Below, piece by piece: positions 5,314-63,750 of a stretch of DNA of 64,000 nucleotides. The first letter of the stretch is position 1. Every line of letters starts with the position of its first letter. A program made the position numbers and the translations under genes. The notes below the pieces were generated by a model. The model was not told the origin of the DNA. It saw only the letters and a list, made by a program, of their open reading frames with translations, and did not search any database. This DNA is from Obrimoposthia wandeli (taxonomy: Eukaryota): assembly GCA_977020255.1 (NCBI GenBank), contig CDROCS010002432.1, positions 62,001-126,000 of the forward strand, given 5' to 3'.

Positions 5314-8300
5314 CTAATCTTCTTCAACCAAAGTCATCAATGACGTATTACCACCAGAAGCAGTAGTATCAATACTGATGGTTTTTTCAGTTAATAAACG
5401 CTGAATTAAACTATCAAAGTATTCTGAACTGATCACGGGAAGTATTGCACCTTCACGTTCGGCTAATTTTTCACTGATGTAATGTTTACGATCACAATGA
5501 CTATCAACCACAACGCCGGCTAAAGCAGGGTGCGATAACATTGTTGATAAATGGCGTAAACGTGCAACCTGGAAAACACCTTCATCAGCACCTGTCGACA
5601 AAAACTTATCTCTAAAGGCAATGGCTTCATCGTAGTACAAGTCAGACACTACACTTATGACGGTATTACCTGTTGCTAATGAGGTAACAATAGAAAGCAC
5701 CCAGAAGTGAAAGCTAACGGTGGCATCAGCAAAACAGATAATGTTACCGCGGTTTTCTAAATACAGAATATTCGATTCGCCTGTTGGACCCGGTAAAAAC
5801 GTGGGCTTTTTCAAACGTTTTTCAATATCAATTAACTGTGAACGAGCCGACGTTAAGGTGCGATTTAAATCGTCCGCCAAATCATCAACAATGCCGACAT
5901 GCGCAATTTTTGCGAGCAGCTGACGAACACAAGAAATACGTGTGTTTAACTCAGTTAAGCGCCAATTTTTTTCAGCAGCATTGGCTTTATCCATAAACAA
6001 AATTGATTCTTTGTCAGACTGGTCATCCCCGTCTAACGCTTCAACTTGTGAAGGGAGTAAATTAAATTGTTCGGCATCTGGTGTGGCTTTTTCTATCACT
6101 AAACGTGTTAAGTAGTTCGGGCCACCCGCTTTTGGTCCTGTGCCTGAAAGGCCACGGCCACCAAAAGGTTGTACGCCAACAATAGCGCCAATCATATTAC
6201 GGTTGATATAAACATTACCCGCGCGCGATAGCTTGGCTAAATCAAAGGCACGATGTTCAATACGGGTATGAATACCCATAGTTAAACCAAAACCTGTGCC
6301 ATTAATGTTATCAATAACGCTCTCTATTTCATTACCTTTAAAACGAACAACGTGTACACAAGGACCAAATACTTCCTGTTTTAACACACTAATATCGTTA
6401 ATTTCATATAGGCGAGGAGCAAAGAAAAAGTGTTCATTGTCAGCAACTTCATCAGAAATAGCACACTGGTATAATAATTTACCATGCGTTTGCATGTAGT
6501 CACTGTGGGCATTAAGTGCGTCTAATGCTTTTTGATCAATCACTGGGCCAATGTCAGTGCTTAGCTTTGCAGGATTACCAACATGTAATTCTGCTAAGGC
6601 ACCTTTAAGCATGGTGATCACGTCATCTGCTATATCTTCTTGCAAAAACAGGACACGTAATGCTGAACAACGTTGTCCTGCTGATTGAAAGCCAGAAGAA
6701 ATAACATCATCAACCACTTGCTCAGGCAAGGCGCTTGAGTCAACGATCATACAGTTTTGACCGCCAGTTTCTGCGATAAAGGGTACTTGATCGCCACCTC
6801 GGTCAGCCAATGTTTGTGAAATCACTGTACCGGTTTGTGTTGAACCGGTAAACATCACTGTTTGCACACGCTCGTCAGGCACAATAACACGGCCAACTTC
6901 GCTACCACGGGCAATAACGGCTTGTACTACGCCTTCAGGCAAGCCAACTGATTTCATTAAATCAATGGTGCGTAAAGCAATTAAACTGGTTTGCTCTGCA
7001 GGTTTTGCTAATACAGTATTACCAGTAGCAATTGCCGCCGCCACTTGGCCTAAAAATATCGCTAATGGGAAGTTCCATGGGCTAATACAAAGTACCACAC
7101 CACGCGCTTCTAAACGTTCATCGGCGGCAATGTCAATCGCTCGCTCTGCGTAATAGCGACAAAAATCAACCGCTTCTCTTACTTCATCAATGCCGTCTTG
7201 GGTAATTTTACCGGCTTCTTTAATACATAAAGCAATAAGCTCATCGGTATGGCGCTCTAAAATATCAGCCACGCGACATAATAGTGCGGCACGTTCAGTG
7301 ACCGGCGTTTTCGACCATGAAGCAAAAGTGGCTTGTGCGGTATCAATCATCGCCAACATATCTTCTTTGCTGTGGTGATGATGAAAGCCGATAATTTCAC
7401 TGTGATTTGCTGGGTTCTTAACCGCAACAGCGCCGTCTGGCACATCATTTTTATTTAATAGATTATCAACAAACCAGTTGTCTAATGAGGCTTTTAACGG
7501 CGTAATAACACTAATGTCGGTTAAATCTAAACCTTTAGAATTATCACGACCAAGACCTTTTGCATCATGGTATAACGCAATAGGTTTAATAATTTGATTA
7601 TTGTATTTATCTTTTAAGCGCTGCGTTTTTTCAACAGGATCTTCAAGTAAAGACTCAACCGGTTGAGACTCATCAACGATCGCATTAACAAAAGACGAGT
7701 TAGCGCCGTTCTCTAACAAACGACGTACTAAATAGGCTAATAAGTCTTCGTGATGGCCAACAGGTGCATAAATACGACATTGAATGTTTTCGCCCGATAC
7801 GATTTGATCGTATAAAGAGTCGCCCATGCCATGTAAACACTGAAACTCAAAGCCTTCCTTATCATCACCGGCCAATTCAACAATGGTAGCTGCTGTGTAA
7901 GCGTTATGCGTAGCAAACTGCGGATAAATAGTATCTCTGTATTCTAATAATTTATTGGCACAAGCGTGATAAGAAACATCGGTAGATGATTTACGCGTGA
8001 AAACAGGGAAGTGCTGATGACCATCTTTTTGGGCATTTTTGATTTCTGAATCCCAATAGGCGCCCTTAACTAAACGTACCATCATTTTTCGGTCAACACG
8101 TACCGTTAACTCTCGTAACCAATCAACCACAAAAATAGCGCGTTTTTGGTAAGCTTGTAGCGCAATACCAAAACCATCCCAGCCACTTAATTCGCTGTCA
8201 CTAAATACGGCTTCAATGATATCAAGTGAAATATCTAAACGTTCAGACTCTTCTGCATCAACCGTAAGGCCAATGTTATAGCTTTTTGCTTGTATACAAA

Positions 8301-9138: not shown

Positions 9139-9914
9139 GTGCTTTCCTCAAAATGGCTAAAAAGTAGCTTGGTACTAATTAGGGATAGTTGCAATAGAAT
9201 TAATTCGTGCATTCTAATGAAAACTTAGCCGGATATGCTAGCTAAATTTAGCTTTTTATCCATTTAAAATTTTGCCAAAGCACGATACGCCCGTAGAATA
9301 TTTTTTATATCGGATATTTAACATATATAAAACTGAATAAAAACAAGCAGAAACATGAATGTAAAGGCCAAAATATACTCGAAATAATTTTTATTGTTAG
9401 CCATTAATTCAGCTTATATATCGAATAATAGCTCTTATATTTTCAACGTTTAGGCATTTAAATTATCTTACTGTTTGCTTTTCAGCTTCACTCATTATCT
9501 AACGAGATAAAAAATAGCTCAGAAGCTGTAAAGTAGCACCTTTATATCATCTTATTACAGTAAAATTTTAAGCACTGAGCACGCTTTGTTTTAGTTGATT
9601 TATATCTTACTGATTTTAAATTTGAAAAATATAACTCGCCATTATTTTAGTCTTTTCTGTGTCATGTTTTTTGGATTTTTGGGTATATAAAGATTTAATT
9701 TGTTGAACATATTAAGGTAACCGGCAATGCGAATTTAGTCATGAGGCAGGTTGCAATGAATGATGACTATTTGCCGTAAATGGCTTTAAATAACCGCGCA
9801 ATTATTTTTTAAGGGAAAACCAAGTTGGTGGCTATTTTACTGGTGATGATTGTTAGTAATATAAACTATGTGATACTTTGCCATTTTGTATGTTGATTTT
9901 ATGGCAGAACAAAA

Positions 9915-59351: not shown

Positions 59352-59450
59352 ATATAACAAGCTGTTAAACAAGGACAAAAAAGAGTTGGTTTTGCTCCTT
59401 CCTCGCTAATTTTAACCAACTATTTTTTGCCTGTTAACAGGGCGTTGAGG
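59352..59450 (+). repeat. attC integron cassette recombination site
   Basis: Imperfect palindrome AACAAGCTGTTAAACAAGGACAAAAAAGAGTTGGT ... ACCAACTATTTTTTGCCTGTTAACAGGGCGTT with unpaired extra bases; starts 5 nt after the stop codon; R'' GCATATAAC is the exact complement of GTTATATGC in front of the gene. Confidence 0.85.
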
Positions 59451-60081
59451 CTGTAGAATTTCTCCAAAAAAGGCGTTTTCACGTCTTTTTCTATATCTGA
59501 CTTAATTGTTTGTTTTTTAACCTTGAACTGCGTTTTCGTCTGTGATCTAATAGATATTATTCACCGACAGAAAAATATCATGGCGAACTATAAACCTGAT
59601 TTATCTTGTCAAAGTAAGTTCATTCCCATCGATTTCACACAGCAAATAATCCCGGGTACGTTTGAATATGCGCTTGCGCATATTGTTGAAAATCACCTTG
59701 ATTTATCAGGCTTTGAACAGTGGTATCAAAACGATAAAGGCGGCGCAGCCGCCTATTCGCCATCAGTGATGTTAAAGATTATCCTGTTTGGTTATTCTCG
59801 TGGTTTTATCAGCAGTCGCCGCATTGCCAATGCCTGTGAAACCAACATTACTTTCATGAGTTTATCGGGCGATGTTCAGCCGCACTACACCTCTATTGCA
59901 GCCTTTGTTACGCGAATGAAAGACCAAATTGAGCCGCTATTCACCCAAGTATTAATGATATGTGATAAGGAAGGACTCATTGGCCGTCACATGTTTGCCA
60001 TCGATGGTTGCAAGATAAAATCCAATGCGAGTAAAGAATATAGTGGGACATTTGACGAGTTAACTCGCAAAGAAGAGAAGA
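59447..60081 (+). mobile_element. 5' fragment of an IS1182-family element (transposase truncated after about 167 codons)
   Basis: From ATG 59580: QIIPGTFE...GGAAAYSP.VMLKIILFGYSRG..SSRRIA.AC..NITF..LSGD..PH.TSIA.F...AIDGCKIKSNAS (DUF772/IS1182 pattern); frame runs into the AGTTTTATCAGGCCACCC repeats; left end inferred at GAGGCTGTAG. Confidence 0.82.
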
Positions 60082-61226
60082 AGTTTTATCAGGCCACCCA
60101 AGTTTTATCAGGCCACCCAGTTTTATCAGGCCACCCATAATAACCTGCTTGTATTTTAATCAGTAAACTACACTTAATGAACCTTACTTAGCGAAGTGTA
60201 GAGACTGTTATGCCAAAGCCCCGTTCACAACAAATTAGTTTGTCAGATACGCCGTATTACCATATTCAAAGCCGCACTGTACGAAAAGCATTCTTATGTG
60301 GTGTCGATAAAGCAACCGGAGTTTTATCAGGCGAGTTTTATCGGATAATAACCGAATATTTTAATCAGTAAACTTTAATGAACCTTTACTTAGTGAAGTG
60401 TAGACTGTTATGCCAAACGTACAACAAATTTGTCAGATACGCCGTATTACCATATTCAAAGCAGCACGAGTTTCGCACCAATAACTTATATTTCCAGTAA
60501 ACTACACTTAATGAACCTTACTTAGTATTTTTATCAGGCCACCCATAATAAGCTGCTCATATTTCAATCAATAAACTACACTTAATGAACCTTACTTAGC
60601 GAAGTGTAGAGACTGTTATGCCAAAGCCCCGTTCACAACAAATCAGTTTGTCAGATACGCCGTATTACCATATTCAAAGCCGCACTGTACGAAAAGCATT
60701 CTTATGTGGTGTCGATAAAGCAACAGGCATGAATTATGAGCACAGGCGCGATTGGATAGAAGCGCGAATTTTTGAATTATCTCAAGCGTTTGCCATTGAT
60801 ATTTGTGCTTATGCCGTCATGCATAAAGTTTTATCAGGCCACCCATAATAACCTGCTAAAGTTTTATCAGGCCACCCATAATGACCTGCTCATATTTTAA
60901 TCAGTAAACTAAACTTAATGAACCTTGCTTAGCGAAGTGTAGAGACTGTTATGCCAAAGCCCCGTTCACAACAAATTAGTTTGTCAGATACGCCGTATTA
61001 CCATATTCAAAGCCGCACTGTACGAAAAGCATTCTTATGTGGTGTCGATAAAGCAACCGGCATGAATTATGAGCACAGACGCGATTGGATAGAAGCGCGA
61101 ATTTTCAAATTATCTCAAACGTTTGCCATCGATATTTGTGCTTATGCCGTCATGCATAATCACTTGCATCTCGTGCTGCATGTTGACACAGCGCAAGTGA
61201 ATAATTGGTCTACGCTAGAGGTACTT
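60082..61226 (+). repeat. Head-to-tail array of nine 3'-truncated copies of the left end of the RAYT/Y1 element
   Basis: Units start AGTTTTATCAGGCCACCCA (or decayed versions) at 60082, 60101, 60119, 60320, 60334, 60469, ~60527, 60827, 60860; four of the starts in the array plus the intact copy have ATG exactly 91 nt downstream (60210, 60618, 60951, 61318). Confidence 0.9.
60618..60848 (+). pseudogene. Truncated RAYT/Y1 transposase copy
   Basis: Near-identical to the first 70 codons of 61318-62298, ends in the next repeat start. Confidence 0.85.
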
Positions 61227-61274
61227 AGTTTTATCAGGCCACCCATAATAATCTGCTCATATTTTAATCAGTAA
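60951..61274 (+). pseudogene. Truncated RAYT/Y1 transposase copy
   Basis: Near-identical to the first 92 codons of 61318-62298, interrupted at 61227. Confidence 0.85.
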
Positions 61275-61317
61275 ACTACACTTAATGAACCTTACTTAGC
61301 GAAGTGCAGAGACTGTT

Positions 61318-62298
61318 ATGCCAAAGCCCCGTTCACAACAAATCAGTTTGTCAGATACGCAGTATTACCATATTCAAAGCCGCACTGTACGAAAAGCATT
61401 CTTATGTGGTGTCGATAAAGCAACCGGCATGAATTATGAGCACAGGCGCGATTGGATAGAAGCGCGAATTTTCGAATTATCTCAAACGTTTGCCATTGAT
61501 ATTTGTGCTTATGCCGTCATGCATAATCACTTGCATCTCGTGCTGCATGTTGACACAGCACAAGTCAATAGCTGGTCTACGCTAGAGGTACTTACGCGCT
61601 GGCATCAACTGTACAAAGGCACCCATCTGACCAGGCAATACCTACAGCAACAGACGCTTAATGAATACGAAAGGGAAATGGTGGAAGATACTTCAAACAT
61701 TTATAAACAACGTTTAATCGATATCAGTTGGTTTATGCGCTCCCTGAATGAGCCGATAGCTCGACAAGCAAACAAAGAGGATGAGTGTAAAGGGCACTTT
61801 TGGGAAGGGCGCTTTCAATCACAAGCTTTGCTCGATGAAGGTGCGCTATTGTCGTGTATGGCTTATGTCGATTTAAATCCTGTCCGCGCTGCTATTGCCC
61901 CTACACCAGAGCAATCAGATTTCACCAGTATACAACTCCGCATCAAGGCCGCTATTAAAGGGGCACAGCCCAAGGCGTTACTGCCTTTTATTGGTAATGA
62001 ACAGCAAGATAGAGCAACGGGTATCCGTTTCAGCCTACAAGATTACCTAATACTGGTAGATGAAACAGGGCGAATACTCAGAGACGACAAACGTGGGGCG
62101 ATTACTCCTGAAACCACTGCGATACTCACGAGGTTACATATCAGTAATGAAAGCTGGCTAAAACTGACGACGAATTTCGAAGGTATCTTCACAGGCGCCG
62201 TGGGTAGTGCAGAGCATTTGTGTGCATTTACAGAGCATGTAGGGTTGCATCGAACACACGGTCTAACAAACGCTAAAGCTTGTTTAAATAGCGCGTAA
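61318..62298 (+). CDS. RAYT-like / IS200-related Y1 HUH transposase, long marine gammaproteobacterial type
   Basis: YYHIQSRTVRKAFLCG, FAIDICAYAVMHNHLHLVL (HUH), SWFMR.LNE.IAR.AN.ED.C.GHFWEGRF.SQ.LLDE, CMAYVDLNPVRA. Confidence 0.92.
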   Translation: MPKPRSQQISLSDTQYYHIQSRTVRKAFLCGVDKATGMNYEHRRDWIEARIFELSQTFAIDICAYAVMHNHLHLVLHVDTAQVNSWSTLEVLTRWHQLYKGTHLTRQYLQQQTLNEYEREMVEDTSNIYKQRLIDISWFMRSLNEPIARQANKEDECKGHFWEGRFQSQALLDEGALLSCMAYVDLNPVRAAIAPTPEQSDFTSIQLRIKAAIKGAQPKALLPFIGNEQQDRATGIRFSLQDYLILVDETGRILRDDKRGAITPETTAILTRLHISNESWLKLTTNFEGIFTGAVGSAEHLCAFTEHVGLHRTHGLTNAKACLNSA

Positions 62299-62411
62299 CT
62301 CTATTTTTAACCCAGGTTATATTTATGTTTCCTTGATGGGGGCAAGATTAATGCCGCTATAATTCAGTGGGATGAAGGAATATCGCTCAAAAATTACCAT
62401 TTAGTGTCAAT

Positions 62412-62535
62412 TATTATGGGTGGCATAGTTTCCTGTTCCAATAGGTAACTGTTCATTACTCCATCGTTATAGCTTGTATTTATTATGGGTGGCATAATTT
62501 CCTGGGCATAGTTTCCTGTTTCATAGTTTCCTGTT
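62412..62535. repeat. Right-end repeats of the Y1 element
   Basis: TATTATGGGTGGC at 62412 and 62481 is the reverse complement of GCCACCCATAATA in the left end; CATA(G/A)TTTCCTG occurs at 62424, 62493, 62507 and 62522. Confidence 0.8.
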
Positions 62536-62635
62536 CTCAAGTAAGGTGCTAAGTATGTGAGGAATATATCAAATTGTGCTTAGGTCTTTAATTTACCTAT
62601 AAATCATTTTATTACATGAGAAAGGTTGTATATTT

Positions 62636-63328
62636 GTGAATTTTTTTAAACATTTATTTGCTATTGTTGCGCTGATGGCAAGCCTGAACAGCGCTGCTGA
62701 AACAATCACCTTGGCTGTTGAGAATAGCTGGCCACCTTTTGCTGATAAGGATGGTAATGGAATTTCCAAAGAAATCATTCAAGCAGCGTATAACTCAGTA
62801 AATATGCGTGTTGAATTCATTGTTGTGCCATATGCTAGGGCATTAAGAATGGTTGAACAAGGGCAAGTGGATGGTGCCTTCAATGTGGCAAAACAAAAAA
62901 GCACGTTGGAAAAGTTTCACTTTGGAGAGGTGCCTATTTTCCAAACCAGCGCCTCTTTTTACTACCACATTGACTCAGCGATGAACTTTACCTCTAACAA
63001 TGAAATACTTAAAGACACCTCTGTTGGCGTTATTATTGGCTACGAATATGGTGATAATTACGAAAAAAATAAACACCGATTTAAAGAAGTCAAAGTCGCT
63101 AATCAAGCACAACTATTTCAGCTCTTGAAAAAGAAGAGAATCGATGTGGCAATTATGTTTGATGAAGTTGTTAAAAGTAAGTTAGATAATATGCAACTCG
63201 ATTTCGATGACATCAGAAAAGGCAGTATCAACCACGAAAGCTATATTCATGTCGCCTTTAGTCGGGCAAAAGATACGGCTAAAGCTATGCGCTTACTCGA
63301 TAAAGGCTTACGTAATATTAAACAATGA
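62636..63328 (+). CDS. Polar amino-acid-type periplasmic substrate-binding protein (SBP family 3-like)
   Basis: Signal peptide ending SAAA; ENSWPPF, GISKEII, VPYARALRMV..GQVDG, VGVIIGYEYG, L.KKRIDVAI. Confidence 0.85.
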   Translation: MNFFKHLFAIVALMASLNSAAETITLAVENSWPPFADKDGNGISKEIIQAAYNSVNMRVEFIVVPYARALRMVEQGQVDGAFNVAKQKSTLEKFHFGEVPIFQTSASFYYHIDSAMNFTSNNEILKDTSVGVIIGYEYGDNYEKNKHRFKEVKVANQAQLFQLLKKKRIDVAIMFDEVVKSKLDNMQLDFDDIRKGSINHESYIHVAFSRAKDTAKAMRLLDKGLRNIKQ

Positions 63329-63750
63329 ACCTTAAGTTTAGTGATGTTTTTCTTGTTTGAGCTAATGTAATTGATTTTCTGCTCTGATTAAATTGTGTGG
63401 CATAATAGGTTTTATTTAATGTGGGTGTCTTTTTTAGTTTAGTTATTGTTCAATTACTTTAGATTTTACAGTGACTAACGTTGATATTTTATTTTTGAAT
63501 GTGGCACATGTATTCGACGAAGAAATAGAAGAGCCTTCAAATTACATGTAAAATTTTGTCGATTAAAATGGCTTGAATAATTGGTATCATGGCAATGAAA
63601 ATTACTATCGATGGATTGCTAAAAAGTTTGTATACGAGGTGTTGATACCGGTTATACAACCTCAAGATGAATTGTAAAAGTATTAAGATATTCTAGCTTG
63701 GTACCTATCATTACAGGAAAATACCAAGCTCACTTAAAAGTTATAAATTT

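Follow-up and report, generated by a model that had tools for sequence, protein, structure and literature searches.

Truncated copies stacked outward from a fixed boundary at both ends of TIRYT-type transposable elements

Elements of the TIRYT type stack truncated copies of their own termini outward from one fixed point at either end, and this habit is family-wide. The locus from which we describe it lies in a stretch of 64,000 nucleotides (nt), here called the window, of contig CDROCS010002432.1 (positions 62,001 to 126,000, forward strand) in the Obrimoposthia wandeli assembly GCA_977020255.1. The window holds an intact gene for a predicted single-tyrosine (Y1) HUH transposase of the RAYT class, whose element is preceded by a series of pieces of its left end and followed by a series of pieces of its right end. 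The boundary at which these pieces are anchored keeps a fixed distance from a short conserved box, the two ends are symmetrical, and flanking DNA has been replaced exactly at the boundary. We propose that the transposase probably nicks its DNA at a fixed distance from the box and that the nicked end is rejoined to a variable 3′-OH, giving rise to duplications and to fusions with flanking DNA.

Results

An array of left-end units precedes the intact copy

Ten units that run in the same direction and open with one shared sequence start between 60082 and 61227 of the window. The last is the full-length copy, and those ahead of it measure 19, 18, 201, 14, 135, 58, 300, 33 and 367 nt (Table 1). The 19-nt start sequence is matched seven times with at most one mismatch (60082, 60101, 60119, 60527, 60827, 60860 and 61227), where 0.02 matches are expected, and sequence inspection together with a BLAST map places three further, degenerate starts at 60320, 60334 and 60469/70. 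Downstream of the array, no 3′ remainder of the gene was found. A first-pass annotation of this sequence had described ten starts with one fixed 5′ end, variable 3′ truncations and no trace of the missing 3′ parts downstream, and each of these points is borne out by the counts, the map and the lengths given here. At the right end, the picture is reversed: a stack of right-end pieces mirrors the left one, with the 3′ end fixed and the 5′ truncation variable.

Each of the three long units (201, 300 and 367 nt) carries private substitutions at 96.2 to 97.3% identity to the resident copy; among 23 variable sites, only two are not confined to a single unit. This bears on the possibility that a single copy was expanded by the long-read assembler, the indel-rich part of the array being unpolished noise. 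The contig belongs to a bacterium carried along in an assembly of 1.35 Gb, and the indel-rich segment 60320-60526 finds no support in any of four public runs, having zero coverage by their Logan contigs (best share of words, 0.55), which break within the repeats and do not span the array. Duplication by an assembler, however, would not create substitutions proper to each long unit, and the same architecture recurs in many genera, in Illumina as well as complete genomes, and in the metagenomes of at least six studies. An assembly artefact is thus very unlikely as an explanation of the stacks. The segment 60320-60526 itself, in which all three units have lost the CACCC box and 31 nt of the third unit equal the consensus, is accounted for neither by age nor by the model proposed below, and assembly noise may have contributed to it.

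Stacks anchored at the box occur throughout the family

We surveyed 71 public loci from about 15 genera, some of them in complete genomes. BLAST detects extra copies of the 5′ region in 34 of the loci, and by eye at least a short doubled terminus is present at nearly every one; the genera include Colwellia, Shewanella, Psychromonas, Marinomonas, Paraglaciecola, Vibrio, Pseudoalteromonas, Agarivorans and others. At the left end, the top strand reads CACCC in a conserved box; the right end has the complement, and the element boundary lies 12 to 13 nt outside the box in either case. In a test that was not optimised, and which records the start of the downstream member of each exact repeat of at least 9 nt upstream of the gene, extra copies start 11 to 15 nt before the CACCC-like box 60 times, against about 7 expected. 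In the mirror test downstream of the gene, the upstream member ends 10 to 16 nt past the complementary box; the most frequent distance, 12 nt, occurs 18 times where about 1 is expected. When the anchors were moved by 25 to 60 nt, 4 to 7 matches were left versus 79, a contrast that is somewhat inflated since the anchor had been picked as the best of nine positions. This control and the spacing between units come from an automatic fragment catalogue, used for these two purposes only, which undercounts stacks (three of the nine units in the window were found) because units differ from the resident 7-mer. The gap between a unit and the next start is mostly 0 to 2 nt, and about 40% of abutting units are 16 to 31 nt long, stopping at or just after the box.

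The first-pass annotation had suggested inspecting the flanks of the other genomic copies for fixed-end stacks, and these are indeed found there. In the assembly that contains the window, there are three left-end starts on contig C882, three left and two right ends on C1760, and on C253 four left starts (12, 5 and 38 nt plus a full copy) next to doubled right termini. Stacking outward from one fixed point at both ends is thus a habit of the whole family, and that point is probably the nick site of the transposase.

Two further contigs of this assembly, C985 and C5962, contain miniature elements made of a left plus a right end. These miniatures (L045 on C985, about 1480-1560; L038 on C5962, about 1495-1600) measure about 45 and 90 nt and have doubled termini; in single-stranded DNA they would fold as a REP-like hairpin. 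At locus L073 of Colwellia sp. KU-HH00111, a 123-nt composite of a miniature element and two left-end pieces is duplicated in tandem (1131-1373). Behind it come a truncated copy of 991 nt, three short units and a full copy, on whose other side lies a right-end duplicate of 125 nt. At this locus, an AAGC prefix repeats within the stack, and the composite block was duplicated across several junctions.

Stacks differ between strains with the same transposase

The window locus is orthologous to a metagenomic locus in which the cob operon, a variable stretch, the element, one variable gene, APH, two-component genes and an acyl-CoA dehydrogenase gene follow one another. Across contigs from at least six studies, the 326-residue protein (P0002) is unchanged and the right flanks are up to 99.6% identical, yet the right terminus exists in five alleles with 0, 1, 3, 4 or 6 extra terminal units (Table 1). 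All units share the terminus, and the flank behind it is unchanged in four of the five alleles. The left end either lacks an extra unit or carries one of 20 or 49 nt, and at least seven unrelated left flanks adjoin the identical start, 13 nt before the box. Additional left-end junctions were found in an estuary metagenome (two) and in L172/L173, and in L160 an A filler is repeated within the stack. At L168, the left-end start is fused to 290 nt plus 36 nt of a truncated element that belongs to another subfamily; a junction with such a partner can have been caused neither by homologous recombination nor by local copying of the downstream element. Stacks therefore grow in place, and recently. 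In this respect the first-pass annotation, which had pictured a polar array growing at the element's own left end, holds for growth at its own end, since stack size varies while the transposase is 100% identical, and fails for the restriction to the left, given the mirror stack at the right.

Such variation is hardly what is expected of repeats with a function. Subterminal repeated binding sites are common in transposons (Mu, Tn7 and Ac), and the longer units of the stacks contain the promoter region and the start codon, so that extra binding sites or promoter copies could be kept by selection. Many units are nevertheless too short (5 to 13 nt) to contain a box, their number, length and spacing vary between near-identical strains, and they decay, which makes a selected function highly improbable as the reason for the stacks.

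Nested insertion of the element into itself in the same orientation, with subsequent RecA-type homologous deletion of one duplicated remainder, would also leave short outer pieces. It would explain the missing 3′ remainders and why left pieces lie on the left and right pieces on the right; the long units, with their star-like distances, do resemble independent lineages, and at L073 and L007 long outer pieces lie to the left as well as to the right. Every unit, however, would require a full insertion plus a deletion, and strains with identical transposases and 99.6% identical flanks differ by up to six terminal units of 8 to 22 nt. The outermost 5 to 30 nt would have to be hit repeatedly without sequence specificity. 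Moreover, not one inverted nested copy was seen in about 100 loci, the heterologous fusion at L168 could not be resolved by homologous recombination, and fillers and locus-specific prefixes that recur in a stack would be unexpected. We regard this route as unlikely.

Replication errors that involve no catalytic nick, whether slippage, template switching or unequal crossing-over, would be another source of tandem units if they occur at forks that a box-bound protein has halted. Arrays of equal length (12 nt repeated eight times at L083; 8 nt repeated six times at L165) and the higher-order repeat at L073 are typical of slippage and unequal exchange, and the many units that end at or just after the box are as expected from a roadblock. 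Slippage, on the other hand, needs microhomology and has no fixed boundary, while here the boundary is fixed to a few bases, at a set distance to the box, on both sides; untemplated fillers are not among its features, and the exchange of flanks precisely at the boundary would be difficult to explain if no break occurred at that point. As the origin of the stacks, such errors appear quite improbable. In combination with the proposed nick they have a place, in that a pair of units, once present, is probably amplified by ordinary slippage or unequal exchange, as at L083, L165 and L073.

The DNA beside the element varies along with the stacks. At L169 and L170, the position of the 230-residue gene that lies to the right of the element in the window is taken by a 170-residue N_methyl-domain gene, followed by a left end and 5′ gene fragment of another TIRYT subfamily. 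Different genes to the right of the element and varied flanks to its left indicate that host DNA next to both ends turns over between strains. Within the variable stretch upstream of the TIRYT copy in L169, three short pieces resembling the left terminus of an IS1182-family element are scattered (7636-7750, 8206-8295 and 9829-9886); the piece adjoining the left end is 95% identical to the window, versus about 82% for the backbone.

The gene product resembles TIRYT enzymes

By its sequence and modeled fold, the gene product is a Y1 HUH enzyme of the RAYT class and of the TIRYT type, in keeping with the RAYT-like Y1 enzyme named by the first-pass annotation. In an alignment of 24 relatives from at least 12 genera, H71, H73 and Y183 are invariant. 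The AlphaFold model (pLDDT 86) finds its best PDB match in Escherichia coli TnpA_REP bound to a REP hairpin (4ER8; E value 2e-4, TM score 0.65 on the target), with IS200/IS605 transposases as the next matches. There is no sequence-level match to solved structures, the kinship with TnpA_REP being visible at the fold level only. The NCBIfam RAYT model covers residues 139-198 with 39 bits (cut-off, 80), and Pfam Y1_Tnp scores 22.3 bits, slightly below its cut-off of 23. Residues 200-326 form a helical extension in the model; no Pfam match, to a helix-turn-helix or otherwise, was found for this C-terminal part even at an E value of 10.

At the DNA level, the box reads GGGTG, then G or T, then C (complement CACCC). 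We rejected hairpin-type ends, as the folding of both element ends is no better than that of shuffled sequences. Four single insertions in one Colwellia genome show neither a target duplication nor a shared target motif.

TIRYT elements, or TIRtrons, were defined by a long RAYT-like protein and by terminal inverted repeats in place of hairpins (Di Nocera et al. 2013, PMC3733652), and correspond to TnpA_REP subclass 2.1 (Quentin et al. 2018, PMC6006769). The element studied here shares with them a Y1 HUH protein much longer than TnpA_REP, with a C-terminal extension that is helical in the model, as well as terminal inverted repeats rather than REP hairpins and a low to moderate copy number. The published repeat motif, GGGGWSAS, which holds for “the majority” of examples only, is related to the box found here, GGGTG plus GC or TC, and is not matched by it. 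TIRYT proteins were described with helix-turn-helix similarity in the C-terminal domain, for which Pfam gave no match here. The inverted repeats of TIRYT elements were reported to occur sometimes as dimers or groups (PMC3733652). Neither of the two studies (PMC3733652, PMC6006769), the only ones in the literature searched to use the term, describes end-anchored truncated stacks, a fixed distance to the box or hypervariability in populations. The element class is already known and little studied, and these three features appear to be new.

Features around the element

Table 1 lists the features of the locus. The element ends in perfect inverted repeats of 14 to 15 bp (61238-61252 and 62410-62424). 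On its left, the array ends a fragment of an IS1182-family element, recognized through Pfam DUF772 and NCBIfam IS1182 matches and present in 79% identical copies on C253. In contigs of two public runs (X20 and X1), the IS1182 element runs on intact past 60080, and at the orthologous locus its remnant is shorter than in the window. Its 3′ part is absent downstream of the array and from the whole assembly; with the rest of it not found, no target duplication can be read at the window locus.

Because the long left-end units retain the upstream region and the start codon, they contain open reading frames (60210-60371, 60618-60848 and 60951-61274) for N-terminal transposase fragments of 53, 76 and 107 residues with foreign tails. 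The 107-residue fragment has the HUH motif without the tyrosine, and such fragments could inhibit the full enzyme. For the chimeric, junction-spanning frames of 107 and 76 residues, no exact match was found in public assemblies. Residue 15 of the resident gene (61360-61362) is Q; it is P in 19 of the 24 relatives (motif DTPYYH), in the stack units and in the C882 copy, so that the sole full copy at the window locus may, judging from this codon, itself be drifting. In the interval 62636-63440, the 230-residue gene, which encodes a periplasmic-binding-protein-like product, lies between the right-end stack and two degenerate right-end-like boxes (63385-63440).

The window contig (C2432) is Colwellia-like and bacterial; the assembly comprises 6912 contigs. 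Diverged copies of the same transposon family are found on C253, which is over 4.6 Mb long, and on many other contigs, indicating that several marine bacteria were co-assembled with the main organism.

TABLE 1 Features of the element and its stacks in the window, and alleles of the right terminus at the orthologous locus
Feature	Position	Strand	Description
IS1182-family element, 5′ part	59352-60080	+	Transposase residues 1-167 from 59580; ended by the array at 60080
Left-end units, two, 18-19 nt	60081-60118	+	Each ends directly after the CACCC box; same extra A before each
Left-end unit, 201 nt	60119-60319	+	Left end, promoter region and first 37 codons; 97.0% identical to resident copy
Degenerate left-end units, three, 14, 135 and 58 nt	60320-60526	+	Indel-rich, without CACCC box
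Left-end unit, 300 nt	60527-60826	+	97.3% identical to resident copy
Left-end unit, 33 nt	60827-60859	+	Alternative reading: 33-nt tandem duplication over the start of the next unit
Left-end unit, 367 nt	60860-61226	+	96.2% identical to resident copy; encodes the HUH motif, not the catalytic tyrosine
Full-length resident element	61227-62437	+	From left-end start (13 nt before the CACCC box at 61240) to right-end terminus
Intact transposase gene, 326 residues	61318-62298	+	Predicted Y1 HUH, RAYT/TIRYT class; H71-L-H73, Y183
Right-end stack, three pieces of about 69, 15 and 15 nt	62438-62536	+	Shared right terminus, truncated on the 5′ side
Right-terminus allele, 0 units			No extra unit
Right-terminus allele, 1 unit			Filler base + 12 nt; small deletion in flank
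Right-terminus allele, 3 units			22 nt; two-base filler + 14 nt; filler base + 12 nt; flank unchanged
Right-terminus allele, 4 units			22 nt, 22 nt, two of filler base + 12 nt; flank unchanged
Right-terminus allele, 6 units			8 nt each (L165)

Discussion

The pattern described above implies that the DNA is broken at a constant distance from the box, in one strand at the left end and in the other at the right, and joined to a partner whose position varies. HUH enzymes cleave through a 5′-phosphotyrosine link and leave a free 3′-OH, as established for IS608, ISDra2 and TnpA_REP (PMC3333891, PMC3479197, PMC5027513). We infer a nick, its strand and a chemistry of extension and rejoining along the following lines. 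The enzyme would bind the box and nick the box-carrying strand at a fixed distance, holding the 5′ end covalently on Y183 and leaving the 3′-OH on the flank; transposition would be the normal outcome. Often, the held 5′ end would be rejoined to a wrong 3′-OH. If the flank 3′-OH is first extended by a polymerase into the element, the product would be a local duplication that starts exactly at the nick and varies in length, as do the short units, which are best read as local copies. Extension would often halt where the protein sits on the box or shortly past it, with one or two untemplated bases sometimes added at the variable end. Such a cycle of nicking, extension and rejoining accounts for the fixed start, the variable length, the stop at the box, the extra bases and the prefixes repeated within a stack.

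Rejoining could also involve a 3′-OH further upstream, exposed by resection or provided by a neighboring copy, and would then yield a fusion or deletion anchored at the nick point; where the upstream DNA is another copy of the element, a 3′-truncated copy would be left. This would explain why the IS1182 element is truncated and, at the orthologous locus, reduced to a shorter remnant, and likewise how the seven left flanks and the fusion with a foreign element at L168 arose. The long truncated copies may have arisen by either route. Repeated over time at both ends, these events would build stacks that grow outward like onion skins.

Several observations weigh against this proposal. Paralogues within one genome differ in the outermost 3 to 4 nt of the left end, so the exact point of cleavage is known only to within a few bases. 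In the window, the long units are equally close to the copy on C882, another contig, and to the resident copy, and maximum-likelihood trees, whether of the window units with related copies or of the six copies in Colwellia genome G001, are unresolved polytomies. These star-like distances fit a local and a foreign origin of the long units alike; the independent donor alleles that the first-pass annotation had read from their substitutions are not shown, nearly all differences being private, and its plan to assign each truncated copy to a donor by single-nucleotide polymorphisms led to no assignment. Furthermore, the indel-rich units at 60320-60526 are flanked by clean ones, for which a simple order with the oldest units outside has no explanation, and runs of short units of equal length (8 nt repeated six times, L165) can grow by ordinary slippage once two copies are given. 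Finally, the position of the putative nick comes from sequence comparison.

Among known systems, E. coli TnpA_REP is the closest in structure: it shares the HUH and single-tyrosine chemistry, and its gene is likewise bracketed by inverted copies of the recognition sequence that cluster near it (PMC3333891, PMC3479197). REPs of E. coli, however, are hairpins with a GTAG tag present in hundreds of copies, while here hairpins are not significant and copies number in the tens in the whole assembly; there are also several full copies of the gene per genome, and the stacks contain parts of the gene itself. A canonical RAYT-REPIN system was rejected on the same grounds: no hairpins, only 34 end-motif hits in the whole 1.35-Gb assembly and at least six gene copies in one Colwellia genome. 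The IS200/IS605 elements IS608 and ISDra2 have the same catalytic fold, show no target duplication and leave a 5′-linked end and a free 3′-OH (PMC5027513). They differ by subterminal hairpins, the lack of inverted repeats, cleavage of the same strand at both ends and a specific target of 4 to 5 nt. Membership in this family was rejected, given the absence of hairpins, the presence of inverted repeats and seven left flanks without a common motif.

IS91 enzymes are Y2 proteins of about 400 residues, and their variable junction lies beyond the element, flanking DNA being carried along. Elements of the IS91/ISCR group and the initiation of rolling-circle plasmid replication resemble the present case in having a fixed nick at one end and a variable other junction, with a 3′-OH that can prime synthesis; one-ended transposition of IS91 (PMC13181058) is the system with which the first-pass annotation had compared the array. 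The analogy survives only as “fixed nick, variable partner,” since the enzyme here is Y1 rather than Y2 and the truncations fall inside the element, whereas IS91 gives read-through beyond it. IS91 is not known to form symmetric stacks at both ends. A single conserved tyrosine, the RAYT fold and truncations within the element led us to reject membership in IS91/ISCR.

To our knowledge, the action of RAYT-class enzymes in vivo is not known: work on the E. coli enzyme has gone no further than cleavage and rejoining of REP DNA in vitro, and there is no study of TIRYT enzymes. As natural footprints, the stacks locate the working boundary of the enzyme within a few bases and indicate the strand, opposite at the two ends; the underlying reaction is frequent enough to differ among strains with an identical transposase. 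Amplicon sequencing of one end would be a direct and cheap assay, and the pattern makes sharp predictions for biochemistry. In addition, TIRYT ends provide hypervariable markers for marine Gammaproteobacteria; they cause breaks in assemblies and may be hot spots at which neighboring genes turn over. We tentatively suggest, as a possibility in which our confidence is limited, that TIRYT ends are self-recording nick sites at which 5′ ends made by the HUH enzyme are often resolved by polymerase-extended or foreign 3′-OH ends, so that they are hypermutable, lengthen themselves and exchange the neighboring host DNA. If true, this would amount to capture of flanks and genes at a fixed point, a form of HUH-driven genome plasticity distinct from both peel-and-paste and rolling-circle transposition.

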